Positions 19,311 through 59,567 of a DNA stretch of 64,000 bases are shown here, in pieces. Location of the stretch: positions 62,001-126,000 of the IMG/VR virus record IMGVR_UViG_3300045256_000050. One strand, written 5' to 3'. The position numbers and the translations under genes are program-made. The notes below the pieces were generated by a model. It had not been told where the DNA came from and did no database searches. It saw only the letters and a list, made by a program, of their open reading frames with translations. Position 1 is the stretch's first letter; the number at the start of each line of letters is the position of its first letter.

Positions 19311-19754
19311 ATGAAGACTGTTGAAGAATGGATTGCGAAGTGGAATGAGACTCGGCTGTTGACCAACCTGCCGGAAGAGAAAGTCAGGCCGACGGCCTGT
19401 GCGTTGTCCAACCAGATCGGCTACAACGAGCGGAGTCAATTCCTGCCTGCGTTCCAGCGGTTGTCCATCCCCATCCTGCGGCGGGTGTTCGGCGGGATGA
19501 AGGCTAAGAATGTGACATCCAAGTTGGTTGAGACGCCGACCAAGAGCCACGTCGTCAACCTAGACCCTTTCAACGTTACGGAACTACAGTATGACGGTCA
19601 TGGTGGATACAACCTTGAGTTTGAGGCCCAGCGGACCGCCGAATACTGTGTCAAGCTCGCCGAGTACATCGACGAGTTGGCTTCGAAAGTTGATGAATTC
19701 GTCCTGCTCGGGATCGGGTGGAACGGATCAAACGTCGTCCTCTATACTGAATGA
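19311..19754 (+). CDS. Small protein whose N-terminal half is paralogous to the N-terminus of the major capsid protein
   Basis: KWNETRLL...TACALSNQ...FQRLSIPILRRVF aligns with KWAKTKLL...TAVLLENQ...FKRISIPLVRRIY of the capsid gene at 63114. Confidence 0.75.
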   Translation: MKTVEEWIAKWNETRLLTNLPEEKVRPTACALSNQIGYNERSQFLPAFQRLSIPILRRVFGGMKAKNVTSKLVETPTKSHVVNLDPFNVTELQYDGHGGYNLEFEAQRTAEYCVKLAEYIDELASKVDEFVLLGIGWNGSNVVLYTE

Positions 19755-19761
19755 AGGAAAG

Positions 19762-20433
19762 ATGAAGATTTACTTAGCAGACATCAAGCCGCAACTGCGG
19801 ATCGCCTGGAAGAATGCCTTCAGGGGCGTAGAGAACGTCCAGGTGTACGAGCGGGGCATTGGCTCCATTCTCGACCTGGAGGTTGACGCCCTGGTCAGCC
19901 CGGCCAACAGCTTCGGGTTTATGGACGGCGGGATCGACGAGTTGTACTCGGAAACCCTCGGGTGGCATGTTTCGGAACGTTTGCAGGATCACATCGTCAA
20001 GGATTTCAACGGCGAGTTGCTGATCGGGCAGGCGACCATCGTGCCGACCGACCATGCGGTGTTCAAGTATTTGATCGCCGCCCCGACGATGCGGGTGCCG
20101 ACCCGTCTGCCGGACAACACGGTGAACGTGTTCCTGGCGACTCGGGCGGCGTTGTTCCTGGCGGACAAGATGGCAAAGCGTGGGCTACTGACTTCCGTGG
20201 CGTTCCCCGGCTTGGGGACGGGCATCGGGGCGGTATCCCCGGAGAAGTGCGCACTCCAGATGCGTGCGGCTTACGATTGGGTGTTCAACAACGAACGCCC
20301 GGAGATGGAGTGGAAGAAGGTTCTCGACCACCACACCTACCTCTACACTGGACTTCGGGCAACTAACACTTGGGAGATGTCCGATAACGACCCAGACCCG
20401 GAACTCGGGTGGGAAGACGAACTAGAACAATAA
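19762..20433 (+). CDS. Macrodomain (ADP-ribose binding/hydrolase) protein
   Basis: DALVSPANSFGFMDGGID and SVAFPGLGTGIG motifs; ATG at 19762 after GGA SD. Confidence 0.9.
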   Translation: MKIYLADIKPQLRIAWKNAFRGVENVQVYERGIGSILDLEVDALVSPANSFGFMDGGIDELYSETLGWHVSERLQDHIVKDFNGELLIGQATIVPTDHAVFKYLIAAPTMRVPTRLPDNTVNVFLATRAALFLADKMAKRGLLTSVAFPGLGTGIGAVSPEKCALQMRAAYDWVFNNERPEMEWKKVLDHHTYLYTGLRATNTWEMSDNDPDPELGWEDELEQ

Positions 20434-20445
20434 GAAAGGACGAAC

Positions 20446-20694
20446 ATGGACATTTCGCATGTAATGATTGGTTTCGACAAGCTGGAGGAAGCCCTGGGTC
20501 TGCGGGGCTACGCAACCATCGTGGCTTGTAAGGAACACGAAAGTGGGCGGCACTTAACTCTGCGTTTGATTTCAGAACGTGCCCCGAGAGAGATAAATAT
20601 CCAAGAAGGAGAGCCGCTGTCCAAGCTGGGTGAAGCCTACCGTCCGGTAGAAGTCGCCGAAGTGCAGGTGGTGAAGGCTCCCGCCATCGAGTAA
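20446..20694 (+). CDS. Small hypothetical protein
   Basis: 82-aa ORF with AAGGA SD. Confidence 0.7.
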   Translation: MDISHVMIGFDKLEEALGLRGYATIVACKEHESGRHLTLRLISERAPREINIQEGEPLSKLGEAYRPVEVAEVQVVKAPAIE

Positions 20695-20704
20695 AAGGTG
20701 AAGA

Positions 20705-21490
20705 ATGCCTCGTATTGAGCTAATCACAGTCCCACTGTACAACCCGACTGACCCGTACCACTTTGAGTTCGACAACATCCCGTTGAAGAACATCTTGCGG
20801 CGGCAGAACCTCATCAATCTGTCGCTCGACAACGTGATCGAGCAGATTCGGGATGCCATCGGCACGCAGGGGAGCATGGCGAACCGGCTCAACCAGTCGA
20901 TCAACGCCGACGGTAGTCTGAAGACGGACGCCATTGACGAGGCACTTCACAGCGTTGAGGAACACGAAGACACGGTAGACTATGTTCGTATGCTCCGGTC
21001 CGAGTCCGACAAGCTGGCGTTGATCGCCGACGAGGCGACCAACACTTCTTTGGAAATTCAGCTTGACGACGACGGGGATGATGTCGTAACATTAGACAAT
21101 GGTCCGGCGAGACTCGTCCCCAGCAACACGGTGACGTGGAGCGTCGAGTCCCCGAACAAGATCAGTGCAAATCTGGCGTTCCCGGCCGAGGCTGCCCACA
21201 AGCATTACTACGACCAGGAACCAGTTCCCGCCGATCTCACCGAGCCGGACTACATTAACTACAAGGTAAACTCAGCGGCCACGCCGTTCGTCGAAGGCAC
21301 CCTGCGTGTCTACATCAACGGCGTGCGGTTGTCCGCCACAACTTCCATCTACGTCCCAGGCGCACTGGTAAACGACCCCTGGACGCTGATGACCTACACG
21401 CCCGACTTCGAGAACGGCACGTTCGCCCTTTCTACCGCCGTGTCCGAAGAGGACGTAGTAAGAATTGACTATGACATCTCGTACATCTAA
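20705..21490 (+). CDS. Putative virion structural (tail-associated) protein
   Basis: C-terminal GTLRVYINGVRL...VVRIDY beta-domain common in tail proteins; acidic. Confidence 0.6.
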   Translation: MPRIELITVPLYNPTDPYHFEFDNIPLKNILRRQNLINLSLDNVIEQIRDAIGTQGSMANRLNQSINADGSLKTDAIDEALHSVEEHEDTVDYVRMLRSESDKLALIADEATNTSLEIQLDDDGDDVVTLDNGPARLVPSNTVTWSVESPNKISANLAFPAEAAHKHYYDQEPVPADLTEPDYINYKVNSAATPFVEGTLRVYINGVRLSATTSIYVPGALVNDPWTLMTYTPDFENGTFALSTAVSEEDVVRIDYDISYI

Positions 21491-22046
21491 GAAAAAGGCA
21501 GAGGTAGTACGTCCCGAGTTCGGGTTCGTGATCCTCTGCCCGGAACGCAACCTCGGTGGGTTAAAGAACACCGTCAACTCGATCAAGAGCCACTTCCCGG
21601 AATGCTCCTACGTCTGCACCGTCGGCGACGACGTGCAGAAGGACGAGTTGGCCGAGATGATCGGGATTTGCAACACCGTCAAGGCCGGGAACACGATCAC
21701 GTCCCTCATCAACGTGGGGATGAAGCACTCGGACGCCGAGTGGAACATCATCGTCTTTTCCGGTAGCTGGCTCCGCACCAGCCTCATCAACAAGGCCAGG
21801 ACGTTCATCAAGAGCGACCGGGATGTGTTGTTCCCGGTGGTTGACTGGAAGACGAACTTCGTGGACGGCTCGATGAACGGCATATTCCTGCACCGCAAGA
21901 TGTTCGAGGACGCCGGTGAGTTCCCCGCCGGGGCGATGGAGAAGGCGGGCGTGAGCGACATCGAGATGGCGAAGCTGTTTTGGGCGGCTGAGGCCATCGA
22001 GAAGGGTGCGATCTTCAAAGCCATCGTGGGAATGCGAGTGTGTTAA
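21471..22046 (+). CDS. Degenerate GT-A (family 2-like) glycosyltransferase-fold protein
   Basis: FVILCPERN...LINVGMKHSDAEWNIIV resembles the GT2 N-terminal domain; no clear DxD. Confidence 0.45.
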   Translation: MTSRTSKKKAEVVRPEFGFVILCPERNLGGLKNTVNSIKSHFPECSYVCTVGDDVQKDELAEMIGICNTVKAGNTITSLINVGMKHSDAEWNIIVFSGSWLRTSLINKARTFIKSDRDVLFPVVDWKTNFVDGSMNGIFLHRKMFEDAGEFPAGAMEKAGVSDIEMAKLFWAAEAIEKGAIFKAIVGMRVC

Positions 22047-22556
22047 ATGCCAGTCCTGTCCGACGTTACCCGTGCCCGCCTCCTAGACGCCAACCAGAAC
22101 CCTCTTACGGAATGGCACGCAGTTTATAACCTAAAGCCGGAACTGTCGGGCGGGAACAGCATGTTCCTGGTGGACTTGGCCGTTGCCGCCCGGAACGACA
22201 GCTTCGGCTCGGCAATCGTCACCCGTGACCCGTTCAGCAACATGATGCTACTGGTGCAACGGTCCGGCGACAACCACCACAACTACTACCTGTTCAAGAA
22301 CTGTATCTTCCAGAGCTTCAATGCCCTGGATATTGCGGAAGGGGTTTGGTACGGGGAGACGACGTTCTACTGTCAGTTTTACGAGATTCACACGGGGGAC
22401 AGGCTCCAAATCATCCGGCCCATCAGAAGTCAACAATCACGGACCCAGGCTAATCCCGACACCGAGATTAGAAACAGGTTGCAAGACCTGGGGAGAAACC
22501 CGGATTGCGGCAGAGACTCTGATGGGCCGGTGGATTGGCTCAACAACGGCTTTTAG
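22047..22556 (+). CDS. Hypothetical protein ending in DWLNNGF
   Basis: 169-aa ORF abutting the previous stop. Confidence 0.65.
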   Translation: MPVLSDVTRARLLDANQNPLTEWHAVYNLKPELSGGNSMFLVDLAVAARNDSFGSAIVTRDPFSNMMLLVQRSGDNHHNYYLFKNCIFQSFNALDIAEGVWYGETTFYCQFYEIHTGDRLQIIRPIRSQQSRTQANPDTEIRNRLQDLGRNPDCGRDSDGPVDWLNNGF

Positions 22557-23092
22557 ATCAAGCCGTAGGTGAACGACCAGCGGTCATTCTCCTTATGTTT
22601 ACCCTGGTTCACTTCGTCCAGGTAGTTATACAACTCGTCCCAAGACCCGAACATGAAGTCCAGCGGGATGAACCCGTAGTACCACAGCGGGACGTATTCC
22701 TTGCCCTGCGGACACATCAACAGTGTGGGCTTCTTTTGGTTGCTGCTGTTGATGATCTCGTGGTGCGTGCCGGTCGTGGGCACCTTCCGGGGAAGGTACG
22801 AGATCACGATGTCGGCCCGGTCCACCATCTTCAGGTCTTTCTTCACGAACTGGCGGGCGATCCGCTGCATCGTGTCGAAGTCCTTCTCGGCCTGAGCTTT
22901 CGTGAGTGAAGGCACCCACTGCTGCTTCGGGTCGTCGAACGGGTCGAACAGATCGAGGCCGAACCGCTCGGTCAGCACCTTCTTCGGTTCGGTCCGCCAG
23001 TTGTGGCCGGACGTGTCGTGTTCAATCGGCCCGGACAGGTAGACTCGCTGTCCGGCCAAGTAACTTGTCTTTCCTTCCGTGGACACGAACAT
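22553..23092 (-). CDS. Nucleoside 2-deoxyribosyltransferase / nucleotide N-glycosidase-like protein
   Basis: VYLSGP, DLKMVDRADIVI and TGTHHEI...KKP motifs; GGAGG SD. Confidence 0.8.
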   Translation of the reverse strand: MFVSTEGKTSYLAGQRVYLSGPIEHDTSGHNWRTEPKKVLTERFGLDLFDPFDDPKQQWVPSLTKAQAEKDFDTMQRIARQFVKKDLKMVDRADIVISYLPRKVPTTGTHHEIINSSNQKKPTLLMCPQGKEYVPLWYYGFIPLDFMFGSWDELYNYLDEVNQGKHKENDRWSFTYGLI

Positions 23093-23141
23093 TCCTAGTC
23101 CTCCTTAACTTTCATAATCACAGTACCGAAACGAGGAAAAT

Positions 23142-23876
23142 ATGTCAAGCATCGACCCCCAGAAGTTGTTCGAGAACATTCAGGAACTCCTGGCGAAAGC
23201 CGAAATGCCGGAGCGGCACACCTTCTTTCAGATGAAAAACTTCATCGTCGGCAAGGAATGCACGGTACAAGGCCAGTTGTGGCAGATCACCCGTGAACTC
23301 CGTGCCCGGTCGGACTCCCTCCTGGCCCTCCACGACCAGATCGCCGACTCCCAGGATAGCATCGAATTGCTGAACATTGCAACTGAGCGGCTGCGGATTA
23401 ACCACAAATCCTCCGGCACGATGGGGAACGACGAACTGGACGAGCGGGAAAAGCAGGTCAAGTTGCGGAAACTGGACCGGGAGCGGGCTTCCCTGGAAAG
23501 AACCGTGGAAACCCTGAAGAATAAATCTAAATACCTTCTGGAAGAGATGGCTTACCTTTACAACGCCCACGAGACGTTGAGTAAGGTTCAGGCCATGAAG
23601 CCGCTGGATGACGTGCAGGCACAGCAGGAATACTGGAACGAAAAGCTCACCGAAGAACTCAATCTTCGCCTACTCCTCCGTAACCCGCTCGACAGCGATT
23701 TTGTAAAGACCATCCTGGCCCTCGAAGACACGTCGCCTGTCAAGAAGCAGATGGTCGAAATCCTCGGCAAAGTTCAGAAAAACATGCTCGAAGAACGTGA
23801 CCGGCAGTTGGCCCTCGCCGCCGACAAGCAGACCGGCCAGCACAAGGCTTTACTGAGAAAACAAGGTGGTAAGTAA
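23142..23876 (+). CDS. Hypothetical coiled-coil protein
   Basis: 244-aa ORF, GAGG SD, heptad-rich centre. Confidence 0.8.
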   Translation: MSSIDPQKLFENIQELLAKAEMPERHTFFQMKNFIVGKECTVQGQLWQITRELRARSDSLLALHDQIADSQDSIELLNIATERLRINHKSSGTMGNDELDEREKQVKLRKLDRERASLERTVETLKNKSKYLLEEMAYLYNAHETLSKVQAMKPLDDVQAQQEYWNEKLTEELNLRLLLRNPLDSDFVKTILALEDTSPVKKQMVEILGKVQKNMLEERDRQLALAADKQTGQHKALLRKQGGK

Positions 23877-24919
23877 TGGCTATCGACAGAATCTCCTCAC
23901 TGGATGAAGGTTACGCAACAGGGGATTTGTCCGTCTTCCCGACCGCCCTGGACGACAAGAACATTCTGTACACGGCCACGAACAACTCCAAGACTTCACT
24001 GAAGCAAACCCTGTCCTACAACGGCCAGATCGTCGTCGTGGACGACACGACCGGGTTCCCGGACCGGGGCATCATCCGCATCGGGTTCACCGGCGAGGGC
24101 GAGGGGAACTTCGAACTGATCGCCTACAACAAGAAGACGGGTAACACCTTCCAGCAGTTGAAGCGGGGGTTCGCCGGGTCCAAGCAGGGCGTATGGCGTC
24201 CGGGGCAGGCGTACATCACGAACAGCGTCGTGGCGGAACACCACAACGCCATCAAGGACGCCATCCTGAACATTGAGAAAGACCTGGGGACGAAGGAAGA
24301 CCCGGACCCGCTGTCGCTCAACGGCATTCTGAAACAGCAGGAAGTACGTTTCCTAACGCCGAAACCCCTGTTCCGGGCGTTCCCGACGAAGGGGCCACCC
24401 CCGCATCAGGTCCGGTTCCAGAACTTCACGACGGGGCACATCGTCCGCAACCTGTGGGACTTTGGCGACGGCGGTACGTCCCTGGAGAAGAACCCGGTCC
24501 ACACCTATCTGCAAGAGGGTGTGTACACGGTGAAGTTGAACATCATCACTTCGACGGGTGCCCAGGGGGTTGCGACGAAGACCGGCTACATCACTGTGGA
24601 CAAGGACGAGAACATTCCGTTCGTCTACGTTGACTCGCTGCTCAACCCGTACTCCGTGGAGACGGCCTCGGCGTTGACCGACGGCGGCAACCCGACGGAG
24701 CCGAAGACGTTCGTCTTCGTGGATCAGTCGGACGGCGACATCGTTCAGCGGAATTGGGTGTTCGGCGACGGACAGCAGTTCACTGAGAACGACCCGGACA
24801 TCCATACGATCTCCCACGTCTACGACAAGCCCGGAACGTATGACGTGACTCTGATCTTGATCTACAGCAACCGGCGGCTGAAGAAAGTGAATTTGTCTGA
24901 AGAACTGGTGGTTTTGTAA
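23876..24919 (+). CDS. PKD-domain virion/fibre protein, paralog 1
   Basis: Two WDFGDG / WVFGDG PKD motifs; N-terminal VAEHHNAIKDAI block. Confidence 0.85.
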   Translation: MAIDRISSLDEGYATGDLSVFPTALDDKNILYTATNNSKTSLKQTLSYNGQIVVVDDTTGFPDRGIIRIGFTGEGEGNFELIAYNKKTGNTFQQLKRGFAGSKQGVWRPGQAYITNSVVAEHHNAIKDAILNIEKDLGTKEDPDPLSLNGILKQQEVRFLTPKPLFRAFPTKGPPPHQVRFQNFTTGHIVRNLWDFGDGGTSLEKNPVHTYLQEGVYTVKLNIITSTGAQGVATKTGYITVDKDENIPFVYVDSLLNPYSVETASALTDGGNPTEPKTFVFVDQSDGDIVQRNWVFGDGQQFTENDPDIHTISHVYDKPGTYDVTLILIYSNRRLKKVNLSEELVVL

Positions 24920-27204
24920 TGACGATCCCTACAGCGAGTGACTACCCGGACGCCTTCGACTCGGACACTAACCTGTTCGCAGTTCATGACGGTCTGCGGG
25001 TCCGTCTTGCCGAAGATTACAACCCCGGCGATACCGAGATCACGGTGGAGGGCGACCTTCTCATCCTGTCTCGGTTCCCGCCGACGGGCATCATCACGCT
25101 CACCGAGCAGTGCAGCGACATCGACAAGCGGGCCATCTCGCTGTTCTACTCGAACATCGACACGGCCACGGGCGTCATCAGCGGCCTCGAAGTCCTGCCG
25201 ACGTTCGTAGATGTTCCGAAACTCAAGCGGATCACGAACGTCACGCAGAACGTCATGGCTCAGCACCACAACGCCCTGAAGGACGCCCTGATCGCTATCG
25301 AAGAGTTCATCGGCGTCAAGGGCACCGTGGACGACCTGCCGTTCGGGCCGACGATGGAAGGCCGGGTCAACTTCTTACGCAAGGTGGTTCTCATCCCCCG
25401 TGCGTGGTTCACCGCCGACAAGCGGACGGGCATCGTCCCGCTCGACATCGAGTTCCGTGACCTGAGCTTCCGCCTGGGTACTGACGGCACCGCCGGTCCC
25501 GTGACGATCTCCTGGGACTTCGGCGACAACACGACCAGCAACATCTCGCTCATCAGCGTCATCAGTGAAACCTCCGTAGTTCCAGAGGACGCCGAGAACG
25601 TGTTGGTTTACGACACGGACGGCGGGACGATCAAGAAGACCTACCTGCGGCCCGGCATCTTCGACGTGACCCTGACCGTCACGAACGACTTCGGCAGCGA
25701 CTCCTGCACCTTCCCGGCCTTCATCAAGGCTCGGGTGAAGGCACCGGACGAGGCCATCATCAAGTTCCAGAACGGCGAAGGGCAGACGATCACCCCAGGC
25801 GTGCCGGTCAACGGACCGTACACCGTGAACCCACGGGTGCGGGCACCGATCAACACCATCATCAATCTGTTCATCCCGGACGGAGAGAACCTGTCCACGC
25901 CGGGAATCAGCTTCGGCGGGGAACCGCTCGACGGCAGCGGCTCGCCGATTGACCCGATTGTGAACTACACCTGGAGTCTGGGTGACGACCTGAACCACCC
26001 GAACGCCTCCAGCACGAAGGCGTCTTACTCTATCGGCGGGTTGTACGACCTGAAGCTGCGGGTGGACACGGACTTCGGGGCTTACAGAATCACCACCTAC
26101 GAGAACTGCATCGACGTGGTGGAGAACGTGAACCTGTGGCTGTGGACGTTCGACACGGGCGTTACGGTCCGGGCCTACGAGTATGGGTTGATTAGCGAAA
26201 CATTCAAGCTCAACAGCAACTCGTCGCAGATCGTGTTGCGGGACGACAGCTTCTTGGACAACGTGCCGTCGGCCTCGCAGCAGAAGCGGGAGTTCAAGCG
26301 GAACACCGGCTTTGCTCCCCGTGGTACGCTGGAGTCGGGCCGTGGCGGCTCTGTGTTGCTTTATTGGGCGAGCGGCCGGTCTGGTTCCGACCCGATCAGT
26401 GCCGAGGAGATTCGGTTCGTTGAGTACACCGGGTTCAGCGACACCTACATCACCCGGTCCGAGGTTAGCCGCCCGTGGAATTGGGCGACGTTCAATTCCG
26501 CCGGGGCTGCGTTCTTCGTGTTCGGTGCCCCGACCACCGTGCCCTCGCCATCGACTTCGCCGACCAACCCGACGAAGACGATCCTCGACCTGACGTTCTT
26601 GACGACCACGGACGAAACGCTGACGGTGGACAACTTCAGCAACGGTGCCCAGGAATTGTTGAGTAACGTGGCCTCGTATGACGACGACGGCAACAGCATC
26701 TACGGTAACTTCAGCGTGTACCGGACGGCCTGGAAGGACAACACCGGGTACATCACCCGGAACTCGGGCATCGGCCCGTTCTTCCGCATCAAGAGCTTCT
26801 ACCGGACGGAGGGGACTGTGGGCAACCCGTTCCAGACGATCCGCAAGCTGACGGACATGCAGGGGCCGACGAAGACCGAGGGCCAGTTGACTAACTTGAG
26901 CCAGGGTGTGTACTTCTTCAACAACTCCGGGTCGATCTCGGCGTTCAGCGACACGAGCTTCACTTGGTCTACGGGCGGTCCTGGGTTTAACTCCGTGGCG
27001 TACCGGGCTTTGCAAGATACCGGCGTTCCGGGATACGATAATACATCGAACACGCTGCTGTGTACCTCGGACGGGGACAAGCGGGCGTACCTGAGCTTCG
27101 ACTACAGCGAGAACGTGTTCCTGAAGTTCTCTGAGACGGACCTAACATTCACCGCCCTGGGCGCACGGCCGAGCGGCGAGCAATGGATCATGGGAGTTTA
27201 CTAA
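24919..27204 (+). CDS. PKD-domain virion/fibre protein, paralog 2
   Basis: WDFGDN and WSLGDD PKD motifs; MAQHHNALKDAL block; beta-rich C-terminus. Confidence 0.85.
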   Translation: MTIPTASDYPDAFDSDTNLFAVHDGLRVRLAEDYNPGDTEITVEGDLLILSRFPPTGIITLTEQCSDIDKRAISLFYSNIDTATGVISGLEVLPTFVDVPKLKRITNVTQNVMAQHHNALKDALIAIEEFIGVKGTVDDLPFGPTMEGRVNFLRKVVLIPRAWFTADKRTGIVPLDIEFRDLSFRLGTDGTAGPVTISWDFGDNTTSNISLISVISETSVVPEDAENVLVYDTDGGTIKKTYLRPGIFDVTLTVTNDFGSDSCTFPAFIKARVKAPDEAIIKFQNGEGQTITPGVPVNGPYTVNPRVRAPINTIINLFIPDGENLSTPGISFGGEPLDGSGSPIDPIVNYTWSLGDDLNHPNASSTKASYSIGGLYDLKLRVDTDFGAYRITTYENCIDVVENVNLWLWTFDTGVTVRAYEYGLISETFKLNSNSSQIVLRDDSFLDNVPSASQQKREFKRNTGFAPRGTLESGRGGSVLLYWASGRSGSDPISAEEIRFVEYTGFSDTYITRSEVSRPWNWATFNSAGAAFFVFGAPTTVPSPSTSPTNPTKTILDLTFLTTTDETLTVDNFSNGAQELLSNVASYDDDGNSIYGNFSVYRTAWKDNTGYITRNSGIGPFFRIKSFYRTEGTVGNPFQTIRKLTDMQGPTKTEGQLTNLSQGVYFFNNSGSISAFSDTSFTWSTGGPGFNSVAYRALQDTGVPGYDNTSNTLLCTSDGDKRAYLSFDYSENVFLKFSETDLTFTALGARPSGEQWIMGVY

Positions 27205-27206
27205 AG

Positions 27207-29078: not shown

Positions 29079-29081
29079 ACT

Positions 29082-30847: not shown

Positions 30848-30911
30848 AGGATGTGCTGTGCGGGCCTGAATGAATGCAGTGCTTACACGGGTACATTCTT
30901 CGGAGGACTTA

Positions 30912-31244
30912 ATGAGTAACGAACGACCATCGTTTTCGCTACACGATTTCAAGAACTGGCTGTCCCAACAGAAGGATATGTCCGAGTTCTTCAACATCGA
31001 GAAACCCACCGCCTCGAAGGCAGAGGGCTTCATCGGGATGAGTGTGACCCCAAAGGTGGGGATGAAGAAGTTGCTTGAGAAGGCTCACGCCGACGACGGC
31101 GATGCGGAACAAATGGTTCACGAACTCGTCGAGGAAGGCGGCGTGATCGTTGACACGAAGGGCAAAGAACTCTTAATTGAGGTTGATTCGGGTTGTTTTT
31201 ACCTGCCCCGCTTCTGCGTCCGACTGGTTAAGGACGAGGAGTAA
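30912..31244 (+). CDS. Hypothetical protein
   Basis: ATG at 30912 after GGAGG; N-terminus contains DFKNWL. Confidence 0.75.
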   Translation: MSNERPSFSLHDFKNWLSQQKDMSEFFNIEKPTASKAEGFIGMSVTPKVGMKKLLEKAHADDGDAEQMVHELVEEGGVIVDTKGKELLIEVDSGCFYLPRFCVRLVKDEE

Positions 31245-32036
31245 CGCCTTCCACATGTCGTCCACCGAAACCCGGCTGATGCACGCCTGATCGCCGGTTT
31301 CGCAAACATCCGTGCAATACGTTAGCCCTGTCTTGCGGCTGTGACAGCCCAGACAGGGCAATTCTTTTGCCGTCACCGGCACCACGTTACTGTTGAACAC
31401 CCGAGTGTTCGGGGCCACGCTCCCGAAGAACACCACCGCCGGAGTCTCGACGGCCTGGGCGACGTGGAACGGGAACGAGTCTACCCCCACGAACGCCTTC
31501 GCATCTTTGATGATGGTCGCCAGTTCGCCGACCGTCGTCTTGTTCCTCACGTCAACGTGGCTCGGGACGAAGTGGTCGCCCTCGCCGCCCACGCACACGA
31601 TCTGGTAGCCCGCATTATACAACCGAAGGGCGAGTTCCCGCCACTCGTTCTTGCCCCACGCCCGGCCGACCCAGCCTTCCGAAACACCGGCGTGGACGAC
31701 GACGTAGTTCACCACTTCCGGCTTGTTCACCGGGTCGTTCTTGACGAACAGTTCGCAGTCCTCGACGGGAACCCCGGCCTTGTCGGCGTAGCACTTCAGG
31801 AAGTTCTCGCTCTGGCGGGCCTCGTAGGCGGCGTCCAGGTTGATGACGAGATCGAACTGTCGTTGTGGGTCCGGCTTGATGATGAAGTCCACGAACGGGT
31901 TGCCGTGGAGGGAGTGGTGGCACTCGGTAGCGAAGTAGATTCGGCAGTCCGGGTACTTCTTTTTGAGGGCGGGGCAGACGGCGGCGGCTACGAAAACGTC
32001 GCCGGTCGAACCCATTCGGTTGATGAGGATGTCCAT
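31173..32036 (-). CDS. Glycosyltransferase family 9 (heptosyltransferase-like)
   Basis: RMGSTGDV...KKKYPDCRIYF; FVGVDSFPFHVAQAVETPAVVFFG; C-terminal CxxC...C...C. Confidence 0.9.
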   Translation of the reverse strand: MDILINRMGSTGDVFVAAAVCPALKKKYPDCRIYFATECHHSLHGNPFVDFIIKPDPQRQFDLVINLDAAYEARQSENFLKCYADKAGVPVEDCELFVKNDPVNKPEVVNYVVVHAGVSEGWVGRAWGKNEWRELALRLYNAGYQIVCVGGEGDHFVPSHVDVRNKTTVGELATIIKDAKAFVGVDSFPFHVAQAVETPAVVFFGSVAPNTRVFNSNVVPVTAKELPCLGCHSRKTGLTYCTDVCETGDQACISRVSVDDMWKALLLVLNQSDAEAGQVKTTRINLN

Positions 32037-32404
32037 TACGATTCTTTCTTTCTGAGCATTGTCTTCACCACCTTACACCCGCTCGTGTTGGCCTTCGGGG
32101 CTTTGTGGATGTTGGTGAAGTGGATCATGGGGATTTCCCCCATCGGTAGATTAGTGAAACCACGGTCTTTTAGCCGCTGTCGAAGGTCGGCGTAGGAGTT
32201 GGCCGTCTCCAGGCGGGCCTCGTACATCATCTTATTTTCATTCAAGACCCGGCCGACTGCCATCTTCCACTGCGGCGGGAGTTCCAGTTCCTCCAGGCTC
32301 GCCAGCGGCGAGTTCACTTCCTTGTCCGTGTCCGCCTTGAAAGTGGTCACTATCTTGACCCCCTGTTTGGACCGACTCGCCAAGTAGAGATACAACTTTC
32401 GCAT
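32036..32404 (-). CDS. Hypothetical protein
   Basis: 122-aa ORF with GAGGAG SD, coupled to the GT9 gene. Confidence 0.75.
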   Translation of the reverse strand: MRKLYLYLASRSKQGVKIVTTFKADTDKEVNSPLASLEELELPPQWKMAVGRVLNENKMMYEARLETANSYADLRQRLKDRGFTNLPMGEIPMIHFTNIHKAPKANTSGCKVVKTMLRKKES

Positions 32405-32528
32405 TAAACAACTCCTCTAGTAGTATAGAAAGTAAATCGAAGGTGTACTTCCCGTCGGGTCCGCCGAACTGCTGGAAGAAGTCCTTCACGGTGACGGCGG
32501 CGAGTGCCGCTTTTTCTTGTTCATTCAT

Positions 32529-33185
32529 ATGATACCGTTCCCGAAATACGCCAAGATCAAAGACAACTACTGCGTGGCCTACCTGGGGCAGTGCAACGAG
32601 TACCTGTTGTTATTGAACTACTTCGTGCCCCGGCTGGAAGTGCTACACCCCGGCATCAATATCTATCTCTGCTGCCGTGACGAATATCTGCCAATTCTGA
32701 CCCACCCCCGGTCCTTCCCCATCTCCCTGCTCAAGCAGAAGAAAGAAGAACTCGTCTACGTCAAGGAGATCGTTTACGACGGGAACGGGCACCCCATCGA
32801 GAATTTCCTGACCGAGAGCGGGCTGACCAACGTCCGGGTGGACGTGACCCCGCCGCCAGTGACGACGAGGGCCGTGGTCTTGACTAAGGGCAACTTCCCG
32901 ACGACCGGCCTGAACACGCAGGAGACGGAGTGGCTGCTGATGAAGGCCCAATCGGAAGGGTTCCACCCGGAGGTAGACGTGCCGGTGGACAACGCAGGGT
33001 ACGTCCTGGGGGTGGAATGTTACGAAATGTACCGGGCCGGGTTCGCTGGGGTGCGGACGGCGTTGGTCGCTAACGGCGTTGGGACGGGGTTCTACAAAAA
33101 GTTGTTCCCCGAGTCGGAGATTTTAGAACTGGCGGGATATATAAAATCGAAGACGGGCAAAGTACCTAACACTCTTAGGAGATAA
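32529..33185 (+). CDS. Hypothetical protein, possibly a degenerate GT9-like fold
   Basis: LEVLHPGINIYLCC and YVLGVECYEMYRAGFAGVRT loosely echo GT9 motifs. Confidence 0.5.
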   Translation: MIPFPKYAKIKDNYCVAYLGQCNEYLLLLNYFVPRLEVLHPGINIYLCCRDEYLPILTHPRSFPISLLKQKKEELVYVKEIVYDGNGHPIENFLTESGLTNVRVDVTPPPVTTRAVVLTKGNFPTTGLNTQETEWLLMKAQSEGFHPEVDVPVDNAGYVLGVECYEMYRAGFAGVRTALVANGVGTGFYKKLFPESEILELAGYIKSKTGKVPNTLRR

Positions 33186-33190
33186 AGAAT

Positions 33191-33766
33191 ATGTCAGTAT
33201 TCAAGGTCAAGTTGAACAACGTCGGCCAGGGTCGTCTGGACATCGATCCGACCACGGGTGTTCCTTTTGCTACGTCGAACCAGCGTAGCATCTACGTCGC
33301 TGGTCCGGGCCGCAAGTACCGGAAGCTGCGTGACGGTGAAACCTTCACCGACAACAACTACTGGAAGCAGTTCACTGCCGAGATCGCTGGCTACGAAGCC
33401 GCTTTCATCGAGGTTGTGAGCGACGACGGTTCGGTTTACTCGGACATCCCGGAAGAGAACACGTTCGCTATTGGTCACACGTTCACGAACCTCTCGACGA
33501 GCTTCAGTGACAACGTTATCGACTTCGTTGACACCTACGGCGGTCCGGCAACGTTCCTCCAGGTCACGAACACGACTGGCTCGACCCGTTCGATCCAGGG
33601 CGAAGTCAACGGCGACACGAACGTCATCTTCACCCTCGCTGACGGCGAAACCCAGGTCTTCAACACCGGCGATGTTCGCATCACCATGTTGCGGCTCAAG
33701 GGCGTTGGCGGCACCGACGGTGACGCTCAGGTTATCGGCTCCGTCCGGTCCCTGTCCCAGAGCTAA
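33191..33766 (+). CDS. Putative abundant virion protein (beta-rich)
   Basis: Uses GGT/GCT/CGT/GTT codons as the capsid gene does; TATATAA upstream and terminator downstream. Confidence 0.6.
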   Translation: MSVFKVKLNNVGQGRLDIDPTTGVPFATSNQRSIYVAGPGRKYRKLRDGETFTDNNYWKQFTAEIAGYEAAFIEVVSDDGSVYSDIPEENTFAIGHTFTNLSTSFSDNVIDFVDTYGGPATFLQVTNTTGSTRSIQGEVNGDTNVIFTLADGETQVFNTGDVRITMLRLKGVGGTDGDAQVIGSVRSLSQS

Positions 33767-33786
33767 GTTTGACAAGACAAACAACG

Positions 33787-33819
33787 AACACCCGGCAGAA
33801 ATGCCGGGTGTTTTCTTTT
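33787..33819 (+). terminator. Rho-independent terminator
   Basis: AACACCCGGCA-GAAA-TGCCGGGTGTT followed by TTCTTTT. Confidence 0.9.
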
Positions 33820-33826
33820 ATACGGC

Positions 33827-34066
33827 ATGAACGCCGGTTACTTTTACTGCCCGTACATCCCGTTGCAAGATTCACCCACGGTTCTTGCGCCGGAGGGGAC
33901 GGAGTTCCCACAGGATGACGCCAGAACCATTAACGACATCGTGAACGGTCATGAGCGGTGGCGGTACGACGAGGACGACTACGACCCGTACTTCGATCCG
34001 GCCTCCGTGTTCTACATGGGTGGCAGTCTGCCCATCGACTTTGACTGGCTAAAGGAAGGATTCTGA
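33827..34066 (+). CDS. Small protein with gp23 C-terminal motif and DWLKEGF end
   Basis: MNAGYFYCPYIPL matches the gp23-family AG.FYCPY.PL motif. Confidence 0.65.
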   Translation: MNAGYFYCPYIPLQDSPTVLAPEGTEFPQDDARTINDIVNGHERWRYDEDDYDPYFDPASVFYMGGSLPIDFDWLKEGF

Positions 34067-35046
34067 TGAAGATTGTTACCCGACGGGTAGAGAACCGCAG
34101 GCCCGACAAGCTCCAGCGAATCATGTCCCTGGGCGACTTCGCCGAGAAGCGTAACCAAGTGCTGATTCAGCGGAACGTCGGCGGGTTGGGCGACATCTTC
34201 ATGCACCGGATGATGTTCGAAGATTTCAAGCGGGTCATGCCCGACGCCAAGATTCACTTCGCTTGCCCCCGTCAGTACCACGACGCCGTGACTGACCACC
34301 CGTTCGTGGACAAGGTACTGGACTCGGCGACGGTGGATCGGTTTCAGTACATCGTCTCGTACAACACCACCACCGCCTGTGGCCGGTACGAACTCCGTAT
34401 GTTCCCCTATTCCGGCTTGCACCGGAGCGACATCTGGGCGCAACACTGCGGGGTTCACCTGACGAACCACAACATGCACATACGCATGACGGCCGAGGAA
34501 GTCGCCTGGGGGCGAGCGAAGTTGGAGGAGAACCGGGACCGGCCGGGGCCGATTGTCCTGATGTCGCCGGTGAGTGCGATGGAGAACAAGAACCTGCTCT
34601 ACCACCAGACGGAGGGGACGGTGAAGGGGCTTTGGGAGCGGGGGAATTGTGTGATCGGACTGCACTACAACCCGCTCATGCACTTCACCAAGTTAAACGC
34701 CCCGTGTATCTACAAGCTCTCGGTTCGGCAGTGGATGAGCGTGATTGCGGCGGCGGATTACGTCGTGAGCGTGGACACGGCGGCGTTCCACTGTGCAGGC
34801 GGGATGGGGAAGCCGCTGACGGGCATCTTTACTTTCGCCGACGGGAAGGTGTACGGGCGGTATTACAAGGGGTTCGAGTTGGTTCAACGGCACCGGGACG
34901 ACGGGGATTGGGACTGCGGGCCGTGTTACGATTGGGGCCGTTGCACGAAGACGAAGGCAAACCCGAAGCCGTGCCTGACCGAGATCACTTCGGACATGAT
35001 TCTGAAGGCAACTGACAAAATGTTTGCGAAACACTCATCTAAATAA
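34066..35046 (+). CDS. Glycosyltransferase family 9 (heptosyltransferase-like)
   Basis: GGLGDI...PDAKIHFAC; VVSVDTAAFHCAGGMGKPLTGIF; C-terminal CxPC...C...C. Confidence 0.9.
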   Translation: MKIVTRRVENRRPDKLQRIMSLGDFAEKRNQVLIQRNVGGLGDIFMHRMMFEDFKRVMPDAKIHFACPRQYHDAVTDHPFVDKVLDSATVDRFQYIVSYNTTTACGRYELRMFPYSGLHRSDIWAQHCGVHLTNHNMHIRMTAEEVAWGRAKLEENRDRPGPIVLMSPVSAMENKNLLYHQTEGTVKGLWERGNCVIGLHYNPLMHFTKLNAPCIYKLSVRQWMSVIAAADYVVSVDTAAFHCAGGMGKPLTGIFTFADGKVYGRYYKGFELVQRHRDDGDWDCGPCYDWGRCTKTKANPKPCLTEITSDMILKATDKMFAKHSSK

Positions 35047-35049
35047 GAC

Positions 35050-35292
35050 ATGCCTCAGCGTATTACACCCGTGAAGGTCATGTCCGTGAGCCAGAATGGC
35101 GAGTGCCATCTGACGATCACGTTGGAGTTGAACATCAATTTGACCGCCAACGGTGAGATCGGTGCGTCACTGCAAGCTCAGGGAGAGAAGCCTATGAAAG
35201 CCCGGCCGATTCAGGAAGACGATGATGTCGAACTTACGGTCCCGGATTTCGTATCGGGTATGAAGCTGGACTTTGGTAAACAAGTGGAGTGA
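35050..35292 (+). CDS. Small hypothetical protein
   Basis: 80-aa ORF directly upstream of the actin-like gene. Confidence 0.7.
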   Translation: MPQRITPVKVMSVSQNGECHLTITLELNINLTANGEIGASLQAQGEKPMKARPIQEDDDVELTVPDFVSGMKLDFGKQVE

Positions 35293-35297
35293 AAGAA

Positions 35298-36308
35298 ATG
35301 GCTATTGGATTCGACGCCGGAACCTACAACTTGGTGTGCTGCCACCGCAACGATAAGGGAGACTTCCTTTACCGCCGGGAGGTTAACGCCTTCTTGGAAA
35401 TGCCTCTTGAGAACAAGTTCGTCTACAACATGATGAAGAAGGCAGGCGTGCCGCTGATCCTCCGGGAAGATGCGAACGTCGCCTACGCCATCGGTGAGGC
35501 CGCTGTCGAGATGGCTTACACGATGCCCCAGATCGAGCTTCGCCGCCCGATGAAGGACGGCTGTGTCAACCCGAAGGAGCGTGACGCTTTTCAAATCTTG
35601 AACATCATGGCCCACAGCCTGATCGGGGACGTTGCGGAAGACAAGACGACCCTGTACTACTCCGTCCCGGCCAACGCCGTGAACACAGAGACGGACGCTG
35701 ACTACCACCGCAAGATTCTCGACGCCATCTTCAAGGCGTACAAGAGCAAGAATGGGTACATCGTCAACGCCCACCCGATCAACGAAGCCCTCGCCCTGAT
35801 CTACGCCGAGTTGGCGAACAAGGCGTTCACGGGCATCGGCATCAGCTTCGGGGCCGGTATGGTCAACCTGTGTTACTCGATCTTCGCCGCCCCGGTGTTC
35901 CAGTTCTCGCTGGTCAACTCGGGCGACTGGATCGACAAGCAGGCCGCTAAGGCTCTCGGCGAGAGCGTGGCGTTCGTCAACAAGGAGAAGACGAAGATTG
36001 ACCTGGGCAAAGAGCCGACGAACAACACCGAGCGGGCCATCGGCACTCAGTACAAGCTCATGATCGAGAAGACCGTCGCCGGGATCAAGAAGGGTCTGGA
36101 AGACAGCAAGAAGGGTAACACCGCCGAGGCCGTTGACGTGGTGATCGCCGGTGGCACGTCGAGTCCTCCGGGCTTCGACAAGCTGTTCGAGACGGTGCTG
36201 CGTGAGGCCGAACTGCCGATCAAGATTGGCAAGGTCATCCGCCCGGCCGACCCGCTGTACAGTGTGGCCCGTGGCTGCCTCGTAGCAGCGGAGAACGCCA
36301 ATGTCTAA
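35298..36308 (+). CDS. Actin-fold ATPase (MreB/FtsA/ParM-like)
   Basis: Phosphate-1 IGFDAGT, phosphate-2-like GISFGAG, adenosine motif IAGGTS, terminal PLYSVARGCL. Confidence 0.85.
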   Translation: MAIGFDAGTYNLVCCHRNDKGDFLYRREVNAFLEMPLENKFVYNMMKKAGVPLILREDANVAYAIGEAAVEMAYTMPQIELRRPMKDGCVNPKERDAFQILNIMAHSLIGDVAEDKTTLYYSVPANAVNTETDADYHRKILDAIFKAYKSKNGYIVNAHPINEALALIYAELANKAFTGIGISFGAGMVNLCYSIFAAPVFQFSLVNSGDWIDKQAAKALGESVAFVNKEKTKIDLGKEPTNNTERAIGTQYKLMIEKTVAGIKKGLEDSKKGNTAEAVDVVIAGGTSSPPGFDKLFETVLREAELPIKIGKVIRPADPLYSVARGCLVAAENANV

Positions 36309-36717
36309 CCGTCAGATGGCGTGCCTCGTCCCGATCTTCTGTTTCGTTGTCGGCGTGGCGGTGATGCTCAGTTGTATGGTCTGGCGGGTGGTTCCACCCG
36401 TCGGCCAGCCGATGAACCAACCCGCCCCGACAGCCCCGCCCGAGTTGAAGGGCAACAGGACGGTGATGGGCCACATCAGCACTCACCGCCTGGACGCCGA
36501 CGGGTTGATGCTGATGGTGTGTACGGACCAGTCCTGTCACAACGTTAAGATCACGAACAAATCCGAGATCATCGTAACCAACCTCAACGGTCGGCGTGAA
36601 CTCCACCACTCCTACGAGTCGGTTGCGGACATCTTGAGCAAGACCAAAGACTGTAACGCCGCCGTAGGAATCAGCGGCGGGAACGTGGAGATGGTCATCA
36701 TCTACTTGCCTGAATGA
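36301..36717 (+). CDS. Membrane-anchored hypothetical protein
   Basis: N-terminal hydrophobic segment LVPIFCFVVGVAVMLSCMVW; overlaps the actin-like gene stop. Confidence 0.7.
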   Translation: MSNRQMACLVPIFCFVVGVAVMLSCMVWRVVPPVGQPMNQPAPTAPPELKGNRTVMGHISTHRLDADGLMLMVCTDQSCHNVKITNKSEIIVTNLNGRRELHHSYESVADILSKTKDCNAAVGISGGNVEMVIIYLPE

Positions 36718-36726
36718 AAGGAAACA

Positions 36727-37191
36727 ATGGCAGCTAACATGTTTGGAATCGATATGGAAGAGAGTTTCTTGGATCACGACGAAGTGGTCAAGATGCTGGA
36801 GGCGGCGGGCACCCGATGTGCCTGGGATTTCAACACGGCCCTGGGCGACACGATCCGTGAGAAGTACGAATCCCTGTACATCAAGGTTGTGGAAGTCACC
36901 AACGTCCTGATTCGTAAGGGGGCGAGCGGGTTGTTCTGGATTTGTGCCTCGCCGGAAGTCGCCTCGATCTTCGAGGTTGCGACGATGGGCTTCTACCCGA
37001 CCAGTGCGGAACAGATCGAGTTGGGCACCAAGAAGGTTTACAAGCTCGGGGTCATGCAACGCCGGTGGAGCATCTACGTTGACCCGTCGCTCGACGGCAA
37101 CAAGGTTTTGATCGGGTGTGGCGAACACAAGATGCACGAGGGCGACGAAAAGAGCTACGCCGCAATGACCGTGGCTAACTTTGTCATCTGA
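36727..37191 (+). CDS. Small protein paralogous to the C-terminal half of gp23 major capsid protein
   Basis: WICASPEVASIF...GVMQRRWSIYVDP...NKVLIG resembles gp23-family FII.S..VAS.L...G.L.G.Y.VY.D...VGYKG. Confidence 0.7.
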   Translation: MAANMFGIDMEESFLDHDEVVKMLEAAGTRCAWDFNTALGDTIREKYESLYIKVVEVTNVLIRKGASGLFWICASPEVASIFEVATMGFYPTSAEQIELGTKKVYKLGVMQRRWSIYVDPSLDGNKVLIGCGEHKMHEGDEKSYAAMTVANFVI

Positions 37192-37217
37192 TATTCACTG
37201 ATTGTCTTTCTTAACAA

Positions 37218-37258
37218 GAGCCGCAGCATTTTCGGGTGCTGCGGCTTATATATTTCTT
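37218..37258 (+). terminator. Rho-independent terminator
   Basis: GCCGCAGCA-TT-TTCG-GG-TGCTGCGGC followed by a T-rich tail. Confidence 0.8.
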
Positions 37259-37858: not shown

Positions 37859-37862
37859 AAAG

Positions 37863-59067: not shown

Positions 59068-59098
59068 AAAGAACCCGGCGAAAGCCGGGTTCTTTTTT
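59068..59098. terminator. Bidirectional rho-independent terminator
   Basis: AAAGAACCCGGC-GAAA-GCCGGGTTCTTTTTT between convergent genes. Confidence 0.9.
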
Positions 59099-59417: not shown

Positions 59418-59567
59418 GATGCCTCTGAAAAAACGACCGTGCGGCATAACTACAGGTTAGTAGGCATTATTTGCCGCCACCGTATATAAGCGAACGTACC
59501 GTCAAATCGGCCGCACGGACCATAGATAATAGCGAGAGTGGCAAACATTATCGAGGAGTTAAGAGAT

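Follow-up and report, generated by a model that had tools for sequence, protein, structure and literature searches.

Three short ORFs in the genome of a jumbo phage from a hot-spring mat resemble separate segments of the phage's own T4 gp23-type major capsid protein (MCP), which raises the question of whether they are genuine genes derived from the MCP or the debris of partial duplications and, if genuine, what they might do. The window analysed is a 64,000-nucleotide stretch (positions 62,001 to 126,000 of IMG/VR record IMGVR_UViG_3300045256_000050), and its features are collected in Table 1. A sequence-only reading had proposed that the ORFs starting at 19311, 33827 and 36727, lying 26-44 kb from gp23 and each with its own start, match non-overlapping gp23 segments. 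That observation is confirmed, and the distances are correct. The three ORFs are small, intact and selectively maintained, each a precise copy of one structural module of the MCP; similar genes occur in related huge phages, and we found no description of them in the literature. They probably work by mimicking parts of the capsid protein, although any function is inferred only.

Table 1. Features of the window (coordinates in the window; all comparisons are with the phage's own MCP unless stated)
Coordinates	Strand	Feature	Details
19311..19754	+	N-type mini-gene (147 aa)	MCP 10-77 (propeptide helices and N-arm, motif F.R.SIPL.RR.F) joined directly to MCP 260-305 (strand and spine helix), then its own C-terminal beta-hairpin; N-terminus MKTVEEWIAK
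19762..20433	+	Macro-domain protein	Immediately downstream of 19311, in the same 2.2-kb lineage-specific island (19311-21490)
22047..22556	+	Unrelated 169-aa accessory protein	Ends in the same C-terminal tag (..VDWLNNGF) as 33827; absent from LR756511.1
33786..33813	+	Strong terminator-like hairpin	12-bp stem plus T run, ending about 4 nt before the 33827 start codon
33827..34066	+	P-strand mini-gene (79 aa)	Residues 1-23 copy MCP 425-447 (GYFYCPY..PL, first P-domain strand); acidic/aromatic linker; C-terminal tag ..IDFDWLKEGF
36727..37191	+	A-type mini-gene (154 aa)	MCP A-domain (298-428) joined by a short loop to the last MCP strand (468-481), with the P-domain hairpin cleanly excised
37218..37247	+	Strong terminator-like hairpin	13-bp stem, 27 nt after the 36727 stop; with the hairpin at 33786 it brackets a six-gene unit (33827, GT9, an 80-aa gene, volactin, a 138-aa gene and 36727)
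59097..59447	-	Small conserved head-module gene	An internal start gives a CTS-like N-terminus (MGKFKDWVRQHRE); counterparts in relatives start MKTFQDYVSLKE
61468..62133	+	Prohead protease (Peptidase_S77, T4 gp21 type)	In T4, the enzyme that removes MCP propeptides and capsid-targeting sequences (PMC5694885, PMC8442874)
62153..63076	+	Scaffold (gp22-like) protein	C-terminal tail ..LEDLLALAGLTEQK belongs to a clade-wide tail motif D/N-E/Q-L-L-x-L-S/A-G-phi-K
63114..64000	+	T4 gp23-type MCP (parent gene)	Only the first 295 codons lie inside the window

Homology and module boundaries of the three mini-genes

Because the MCP gene runs off the end of the window, its full 481-aa sequence was recovered from a second contig of the same phage (L002:11647-13089), which differs at 3 of 12,533 overlapping bases. 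A tblastn search of the full MCP against all six frames of the window returned exactly three significant extra hits: 36769-37143 (E 1.75e-27, 46% identity to MCP 303-428), 33827-33895 (E 3e-6, 65% identity to MCP 425-447) and 19314-19520 (E 4.6e-5, 33% identity to MCP 11-80); the next best hit has E 0.63. BLASTP of the individual products against the MCP gave E 1e-27 (47% identity) for 36727, E 1e-10 (65% identity) for 33827 and E 5e-8 for 19311.

The Pfam family PF07068 (Gp23) is matched above its gathering score by 36727 only (34.8 versus 24.4 bits, E 1.6e-8, profile 191-311). 33827 scores below the cut-off (16 bits), although its match (profile 313-332) is directly contiguous with that of 36727 in the profile. 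19311 has no Pfam or PDB match, but its family profile matches the MCP with an hhalign probability of 98.7% (E 2.9e-16). Two features had escaped the sequence-only reading, namely that 36727 also keeps the extreme C-terminal strand of the MCP and that 19311 also keeps the strand plus spine helix.

The genes are not assembly artefacts, as 33827 and 36727 are 100% identical on IMG/VR contigs from another sample as well as on the source contig, and 19311 is likewise 100% identical on a contig from that sample; DNA sequencing runs hold 98% of the sampled words.

The fragment boundaries coincide with modules of the HK97 fold rather than being random: the family HMMs map to MCP 10-77 plus 260-305 (as two collinear segments), 298-421 plus 468-481, and 425-448. 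AlphaFold (AF2) models predict autonomous folding, with pLDDT 94.1 and pTM 0.88 for 19311 and pLDDT 80.6 for 36727. The listed Foldseek matches of the 36727 model are almost all HK97-fold capsid or encapsulin shell proteins, with the P1 head at E 3e-6 and TMq 0.67 and T4 gp23/24 at TMq about 0.57. No ORF covers the whole HK97 fold (N-arm, E-loop, P-domain and A-domain), as a shell subunit must; the E-loop and insertion domain (MCP 78-259) are absent from all three.

The three matches tile the MCP almost without overlap, with junctions agreeing within a few residues: 19311 ends at MCP 305 where 36727 starts at 298, and the 36727 excision starts at about 428 where 33827 starts at 425. This raises the possibility of a capsid protomer in pieces, in which the three products would reassemble non-covalently into one minimal HK97-like subunit lacking the E-loop and insertion domain, for example a vertex or special-vertex subunit replacing the missing gp24. 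T4 gp24, the head vertex protein and classical paralogue of gp23, is likewise a duplicate of the MCP gene kept in the same genome, and it aligns with gaps across most of the gp23 insertion region. It is, however, a full-length HK97-fold shell subunit (427 aa) encoded next to gp23, whereas the proteins here are single modules of 79-154 aa that cannot form a shell subunit alone. No second full-length MCP paralogue was detected in the window, in L002 or in the whole of a 595-kb relative (LR756511.1), and 33827 and 36727 are the first and last genes of one terminator-bracketed unit. Nonetheless, we consider this reading unlikely, since the families do not co-occur strictly (LR756511.1 has A- and P-type genes but no N-type), the second P-hairpin strand (449-467) is missing from the set, 19311 carries a terminal hairpin and 33827 a 55-aa tail that are not MCP-derived, 19311 is predicted to fold alone, relatives hold other, overlapping fragment types, and 19311 lies 14-17 kb from the other two genes.

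Conservation, selection and genomic setting

Each ORF belongs to a length-conserved family. The 19311 family comprises 38 representatives at 50% clustering, of 130-190 aa, and the 36727 family consists of proteins of 148-168 aa that all share the same excision. For 33827, homologues P0021/P0022 have 78-84% identity, and a distant homologue (L005:13713-13949) has the same architecture. Lengths and excision points are conserved across 29-91% identity. Where close relatives exist, dN/dS is 0.09 (36727) and 0.04-0.15 (33827), like that of neighbouring genes, over whole ORFs including the non-MCP parts. On a tree, all 17 MCP representatives form one tight clade (100/100) apart from 15 A-type minis, which are not sisters of their own genome's MCP; the minis are thus not recent copies, which points to an old duplication.

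These results contradict the view that the ORFs are non-functional relics of partial MCP duplications, or silent cassettes for gene conversion of the MCP gene. Nucleotide identity to the MCP gene is only 61-65%, with longest exact matches of 10-16 nt, which is too low for homologous exchange. Partial copies of structural genes do arise in large phages: a truncated terminase paralogue lies downstream of the MCP here, and a conserved truncated large-terminase paralogue, CBB_274, is reported in Rak2-like phages (PMC5259590). Those cases of fragment paralogues and 'genes in pieces' in T4-like and Rak2-like phages involve one fragment or adjacent halves, whereas here several non-overlapping domain-level fragments of one protein are dispersed and carry added tags. 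The outcomes named beforehand as fatal to the idea (no HMM or structural match; sporadic, frameshifted, neutrally evolving orthologues) were not observed.

The interpretation offered by the sequence-only reading is therefore partly supported: its core inference, selected modules rather than decay, holds, while the functions it proposed (assembly modulators or chaperones, minor vertex components, decoys for host sensors) remain hypotheses, none of which is shown here. Its suggestion of one coherent undescribed system is only weakly supported. The window is collinear with LR756511.1, and all three mini-genes sit in different lineage-specific insertion points of this otherwise collinear block. 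Relatives, moreover, carry other fragment types, including insertion-domain (in LR756511.1 among others of its MCP-fragment genes), spine-helix-only and propeptide-only pieces.

Possible roles by mimicry of capsid modules

Our favoured, though tentative, explanation is that the three ORFs are functional, old, MCP-derived module proteins of a clade of T4-like jumbo/huge phages, acting by molecular mimicry of MCP surfaces on the phage's own head-assembly pathway. Each keeps one self-contained interaction module of the HK97-fold capsid protein: 19311 keeps the inner, scaffold-facing part of the MCP; 36727 the isolated A-domain, which forms the subunit-subunit contacts around the capsomer axis; and 33827 a P-domain beta-strand peptide fused to a C-terminal short linear tag. 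Each would occupy, cap or bridge sites on MCP, scaffold or prohead core that an MCP module normally occupies, making them accessory morphogenetic or prohead-resident proteins, that is, assembly regulators or chaperones, or minor or packaged head components. Our analysis establishes the homology, the module boundaries, the autonomous (predicted) folds, family conservation, purifying selection, old origin and accessory genomic position; binding partners (including any EF-Tu or sensor binding), prohead location, targeting, cleavage, packaging and any effect on assembly are inferred, for an uncultured phage that has no proteome and that no RNA run was found to hold.

The residues invariant across the A-type minis and the LR756511.1 MCP segment include a continuous run, W33..E56 (W-D-F-N-T-A-L-G-D-T-I-x-E-K-Y-E-S-L-Y-V-K-x-V-E in the consensus), which we place by inference on the A-domain helix region. 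The run is clade-specific, as T4 differs there, and suggests a conserved phage-side partner.

The N-terminus of 19311 matches the T4 capsid-targeting sequence (CTS), MKTYQEFIAE (PMC8442874), at 6 of 10 positions, and by our reading of the alignment about 9 of 29 family members start MK[TS]F..[WFY]. The motif heads 11 ORFs of 58-156 aa in LR756511.1, against about 0.2 expected from a rough hand estimate, as well as a conserved gene inside the head module, although the resemblance is confined to a 10-residue motif, and a short motif alone is not proof. 19311 would enter the prohead core as do the MCP propeptide and the CTS-bearing proteins of T4, such as the internal proteins and Alt; the T4 internal proteins, however, are not MCP-derived. 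There is also a parallel with HK97-type delta domains and phage scaffolding proteins, in that the N-terminal two-thirds of 19311 is homologous to the MCP propeptide/N-arm, which in T4 is removed or rearranged at maturation and is thought to face the scaffold. Here the propeptide-like part is free-standing, fused to a spine-helix copy and a new hairpin, and the family HMMs do not match the T4 core proteins gp67, gp68 or gp22.

MCP-fragment proteins in relatives carry recurrent terminal tags: RSIDDPW.. occurs at the C-terminus in all 9 ORFs with the motif, and MKNHWL at or near the N-terminus in six distinct ORFs. The 33827 tag (D-W-L-x-x-G-F) only loosely resembles the clade-wide scaffold tail (D-x-L-L-x-L-S/A-G-phi), and the two do not co-vary, as loci with RSIDDPW tags have ordinary LL-type scaffold tails; 36727 has no tag. 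The genomic setting also weighs against a role in assembly, since the genes lie outside the head module and in relatives sit among replication, proteostasis and small-ORF arrays, a pattern more typical of accessory or host-interaction genes.

This setting leaves room for a more unusual, and in our view less likely, alternative: counter-defence by capsid mimicry. Domain-precise copies of the MCP, some possibly packaged through a T4-like targeting sequence, would bind EF-Tu or host receptors that recognise unassembled capsid protein (Lit/Gol-, CapRel- or Avs7/Dsr1-type), blocking or saturating them without activating them, and so allow an extremely conserved MCP to persist despite being an immune target. 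19311 shares its island with a macro-domain gene, and in LR756511.1 the P-type gene lies in an array of 70-120-aa ORFs near the genome end. The minis have far longer tree branches than the MCPs (0.3-2.3 against a median of 0.066), and the extreme conservation of the MCP makes it a good immune target. Avs7 and Dsr1 sense MCPs together with EF-Tu (PMC13581612). In T4, proteins fused to the CTS are packaged and stay in the expanded capsid (PMC8442874). Such proteins are then ejected with the DNA and include anti-restriction factors.

The Gol region of T4 gp23 (residues 93-122), the EF-Tu-binding trigger of the Lit protease, aligns to MCP 60-89 of this phage, the most conserved MCP segment. It is retained only in part by 19311, of which residues about 49-70 align to MCP 60-77 (the first 18 residues of that segment), while a mini-gene of the sequence designated L003 spans the whole of it; Gol itself is a segment of the full MCP and not a separate gene. 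In one review's account, the Gol region (29 residues in the first quarter of gp23) defines the function that lets Lit cleave EF-Tu, and a faithful copy of a trigger would be expected to activate the sensor. In addition, no precedent for MCP-fragment decoys was found in the literature, fold cores and buried positions are conserved and not only surfaces, and family members span phages of very different GC content (42% versus 57%), and presumably different hosts, yet keep the same invariant run as the MCP.

It is also conceivable, though very unlikely, that the fragments are dominant-negative poisons of the capsid assembly of co-infecting related phages, whose MCP is nearly identical. The MCP is highly conserved across at least 319 IMG/VR relatives, so a mimic would cross-react, and the genes occupy accessory, variable positions; but the carrier's own MCP is just as similar to the mimic (47-65% identity), so self-poisoning would have to be avoided, and no immunity mechanism is evident.

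Capsid-protein paralogues are so far known only as full-length shell subunits such as gp24. Here, a whole clade of jumbo and huge phages keeps, under purifying selection, free-standing copies of single HK97-fold modules (propeptide/N-arm plus spine helix, A-domain, P-hairpin and, in a relative, the insertion domain), with recurrent terminal tags on some of the P-hairpin, propeptide and insertion-domain copies. Whichever role applies, they provide three small, easily expressed proteins, predicted to be well folded, with clear binding hypotheses. If they act in assembly, they are a new class of trans-acting capsid-assembly factors for very large T4-type heads, and natural tools for dissecting HK97-fold interfaces; if they act on host sensors, they would be the first capsid-mimic anti-defence proteins, and would bear directly on how bacteria sense the 'core phage proteome'.

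The capsid-protein gene and its matches within the window

The window, positions of about 62,001–126,000 of a 244,986-bp IMG/VR contig from a hot-spring or microbial-mat metagenome with a GC content of about 57%, encodes first a baseplate/tail block with a gp5-like OB domain, gp25 and a P2 gpI-like protein. There follow PKD-domain proteins, a GT9 glycosyltransferase and a volactin-type actin homologue, and then a T4-style head module consisting, in order, of the large terminase, an intein-containing portal, a 620-aa protein, a Peptidase_S77 prohead protease, the scaffold and a gp23-type major capsid protein (MCP) which runs off the end. The full 481-aa MCP was read from a second contig of the same phage (L002), which differs at 3 of 12,533 overlapping bases.

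A tblastn search of the full MCP against the six frames of the window gave exactly three significant extra matches, in the mini-genes 36727, 33827 and 19311 (named by their start positions; coordinates and E values are in the table), with everything else having an E value of at least 0.63. A weak match of the MCP insertion domain to a further ORF is not significant. In pairwise BLASTP, 36727 is 47% identical to MCP 303–428 and its last 12 residues match the last MCP strand; residues 1–23 of 33827 are 65% identical to MCP 425–447, and residues 2–70 of 19311 are 33% identical to MCP 11–80. The Pfam Gp23 profile hits 36727 above threshold at profile positions 191–311 and 33827 below threshold at the directly adjoining positions 313–332.

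Family HMMs refine the map on the MCP to residues 10–77 plus 260–305 for the N-type (19311), 298–421 plus 468–481 for the A-type (36727), and 425–448 for the P-type (33827). The three therefore tile the MCP with junctions that coincide within a few residues, and only the E-loop/insertion-domain region (78–259) and the second P-hairpin strand (449–467) are left out. By the established topology of the HK97 fold, the pieces correspond to the propeptide/N-arm plus strand and spine helix, to the A-domain with its P-domain excursion excised, and to the first strand of that excursion.

Coordinates of the mini-gene matches, gene islands and neighbouring or related features
Feature	Location	Strand	Description
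A-type mini-gene 36727	window 36769-37143		tblastn match to the MCP, E 1.75e-27
P-type mini-gene 33827	window 33827-33895		tblastn match to the MCP, E 3e-6
N-type mini-gene 19311	window 19314-19520		tblastn match to the MCP, E 4.6e-5
ORF with weak insertion-domain match	window 33191-33766		E 3.2
Full-length MCP	L002:11647-13089		481 aa
N-type island	window 19311-21490		Gap in collinearity with LR756511.1: N-type gene, macro domain and two small genes
A-type island	window 36301-37858		Gap in collinearity with LR756511.1: 138-aa gene, A-type gene and 218-aa gene, after volactin
Macro-domain protein	window 19762-20433	+	Pfam E 3.3e-11; phrog_2613 E 2e-56; starts 8 nt after the 19311 stop; reading frame stays open upstream to 19591 and overlaps the end of 19311
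Accessory protein	window 22047-22556	+	C-terminal D-W-L-x-x-G-F-COOH motif (..DWLNNGF)
P-type protein	window 33827-34066	+	C-terminal D-W-L-x-x-G-F-COOH motif (..DWLKEGF)
Volactin-family actin homologue	window 35289-36308	+	Pfam E 3.6e-68
Ferritin and peptidase M28 genes	window 51615-53131	-	Just upstream of the terminase
2'-5' RNA ligase/Acb1-like gene	window 55458-56015	+	Between terminase and portal
T4-type portal gene with intein	window 56489-59065; L002:5022-7598	+ (window)	PF14890 Intein_splicing together with Portal_T4
Truncated large-terminase paralogue	L002:16432-17181	-	249 aa, weak Terminase_6N; downstream of the MCP, about 4 kb past the window end
Distant P-type homologue	L005:13713-13949		Same architecture as 33827
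N-arm-type sequence	L003:19976-20443		Included in the alignment for the 36727 model
Second A-domain-like fragment	L011:4144-4362		29-30% identity, E 4e-4 to 4e-3; 1.3 kb downstream of the MCP
Peptidase_C39 genes	LR756511.1 429897-430852 (L162:37897-38852); L177:10001-11169		Directly beside MCP-fragment genes in two different huge phages

Conservation and predicted structure of the mini-gene families

Homologues of the A-type gene are 148–168 aa long, share 29–91% identity, and all have the same excision and the same retained terminal strand; they include genes on a 90.8-kb NCBI contig, on contigs that reach 331 kb, and in the 595-kb phage LR756511.1. In one relative (L011), which has a clear A-type mini-gene, a second and weaker A-domain-like fragment is also present. 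The P-type gene has close homologues, together with a distant one on another genome (L005), which has the same architecture and lies 3.3 kb from that genome's A-type gene. For the N-type, an exhaustive profile-free search found 38 cluster representatives of 130–190 aa, the alignment of which has invariant W11, Q35, R50, P54 and R58; hhalign gives 98.7% probability against the MCP. A 1330-aa protein (P0025) with '12 repeats' of the 19311 C-terminal half was treated as spurious, since it is a repetitive protein with many incoherent Pfam hits.

A DNA search of positions 33000–38000 against 50,697 phage records found nothing, as did tblastn of 19311 against phages. PHROGs and NCBIfam gave no informative family for any of the three genes, and Pfam gave none for the 29 N-type family members. 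PDB sequence-profile searches with the N-type and A-type alignments found nothing significant, and an ESM Atlas look-up for 19311 was uninformative. Searches for related loci with the family alignments mostly returned full-length MCPs or only the source contigs, which precluded a clade-wide table of co-occurrence.

The dN/dS value is 0.09 for 36727 (dS 0.67) and 0.04–0.15 for 33827, comparable to the flanking genes. Nucleotide identity to the MCP gene is 61–65%, with exact matches of at most 16 nt. On an ML tree, 17 MCP representatives form one tight clade (100/100), whilst the 15 minis lie outside it on long branches, and the minis of this phage and of LR756511.1 do not group with their own MCPs. 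This indicates an old origin and faster but constrained evolution, and neither recent duplication nor gene conversion. Decay of the copies, or their maintenance as silent cassettes for recombination, is excluded by this evidence.

The AlphaFold2 model of 19311 is a compact fold (pLDDT 94.1, pTM 0.88) with no PDB counterpart; the best Foldseek match in the PDB has an E value of 0.79, and in BFVD only one uncharacterised 166-aa myovirus protein was found. The model of 36727 has pLDDT 80.6, and its listed Foldseek matches are almost all HK97-fold capsid or encapsulin shell proteins, including P1 head (E 3e-6, TMq 0.67) and T4 gp23/gp24 (TMq about 0.57). The alignment used for the 36727 model wrongly included one N-arm-type sequence, from the relative L003; a cleaned version was used for the HMM work.

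Fragment genes, terminal motifs and genomic context in related phages

The phenomenon is wider than the three ORFs. The whole of LR756511.1 was retrieved, and tblastn of its MCP against the genome shows dispersed fragment genes, namely a 168-aa A-type gene, a 99-aa zinc-ribbon plus P-hairpin gene, and two insertion-domain genes of 227 and 123 aa. Other relatives carry further types, including an 87-aa strand and spine-helix fragment (MCP 247–305, E 9e-16), a 65-aa propeptide fragment, P-hairpin fragments of 66–103 aa, and a 156-aa N-arm/Gol-region fragment in L003. Of the two Peptidase_C39 genes found directly beside MCP-fragment genes in different huge phages, one sits next to an insertion-domain fragment and the other next to an N-type gene, although this may be coincidence.

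Many of these fragment proteins end in a C-terminal motif, [RK][ST]I[DT][DE]xW..., and all nine distinct ORFs with the motif have it within their last 17 residues; others start with MKNHWL. In the window, 33827 and the otherwise unrelated accessory ORF 22047–22556 end in the same D-W-L-x-x-G-F motif, whilst relatives use ..RSIDDPWL.F-COOH; this is probably a short linear docking motif. We first suspected that the RSIDDPW tag equals the scaffold C-terminus, but the link is weak: the 132 scaffold tails share D/N-E/Q-L-L-x-L-S/A-G-phi-K, only 3 of them carry a W-type motif, and the tags do not co-vary with the scaffold tails.

The N-terminus of 19311 (MKTVEEWIAK) resembles the T4 capsid-targeting sequence (CTS) MKTYQEFIAE (PMC8442874). 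Related MKTF..W/Y.. starts occur in about a third of its family. The motif MK[TS]F.[EQDN][WFY], often continuing ..L.LKE, heads 11 ORFs in LR756511.1, against about 0.2 expected from a rough hand estimate, and a conserved small gene inside the head module of many relatives. Its close resemblance to the T4 sequence suggests a large set of prohead-targeted proteins in this clade, although this is inferred from a short motif.

The window is collinear, gene by gene, with LR756511.1 from 580 kb down to 523.5 kb, and all three mini-genes fall in gaps of that collinearity. Two of these gaps are the N-type and A-type islands listed in the table; in the third, 33827 stands alone between a conserved 191-aa gene and GT9. 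In closer relatives the local synteny is kept, with volactin, a small gene and then the A-type gene, and with the P-type gene followed by GT9. Volactin is part of a conserved block (191-aa gene, GT9, ~80-aa gene, volactin) between the tail and head modules, and is 98% identical in protein to the copy in the related locus L008 despite a dS of 1.8, and 62% identical to the copy in LR756511.1.

Strong terminator-like hairpins lie just before 33827 and just after 36727, and bracket the unit 33827, GT9, 80-aa gene, volactin, 138-aa gene and 36727. The T4 late-promoter box TATAAATA is absent from the window, and so gave no indication of timing; no RNA run contains the locus. In other huge phages the families sit in non-structural regions, where their neighbours include DnaJ, ClpX, peptidases, peptide deformylase, IF3, DNA polymerase and arrays of small ORFs.

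Possible roles and relation to known counterparts

Whilst the homology of the three genes to the MCP, their module boundaries, their conservation and their genomic positions are established by the analyses described here, what the proteins do, including any binding or targeting to the prohead, is inferred. We tentatively favour action on the phage's own head assembly by mimicry of MCP modules. The fragment boundaries are those of interaction modules; the residues invariant across the A-type minis and the LR756511.1 MCP segment, in the alignment of the two, include a continuous, clade-specific run that T4 lacks; the N-type family keeps the propeptide and a CTS-like start; and a gp21-type protease is present.

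The main rival, which we consider less likely, is counter-defence by capsid mimicry. The position of the genes is accessory and lineage-specific, next to a macro-domain gene. In addition, the N-type (in part) and L003 genes retain the segment which aligns to the Gol region, a region that binds EF-Tu and is the most conserved part of gp23 (PMC3014915), and Avs7 and Dsr1 sense MCPs together with EF-Tu (PMC13581612). However, a faithful copy of a trigger should activate the sensor, and no precedent for this reading was found in full-text searches. A split minimal protomer is suggested by the tiling and by the lack of any gp24-like gene in the window, L002 or LR756511.1, but appears improbable, being weakened by imperfect co-occurrence, by the missing segments, and by the autonomous, high-confidence predicted fold of 19311.

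The nearest known counterparts are gp24, which is a full-length MCP paralogue; the T4 CTS-bearing internal proteins; delta-domain and scaffold proteins; the Gol segment; and truncated paralogues of packaging genes in Rak2-like phages (PMC5259590), which the truncated large-terminase paralogue downstream of the MCP recalls. None of these is a conserved family of free-standing single-module copies of an MCP, and full-text searches found no description of such genes. We regard the mini-genes as related to the capsid-protein paralogues or prohead accessory proteins already described, from which they differ in being free-standing copies of single modules, and there is a substantial chance that their function is something new.
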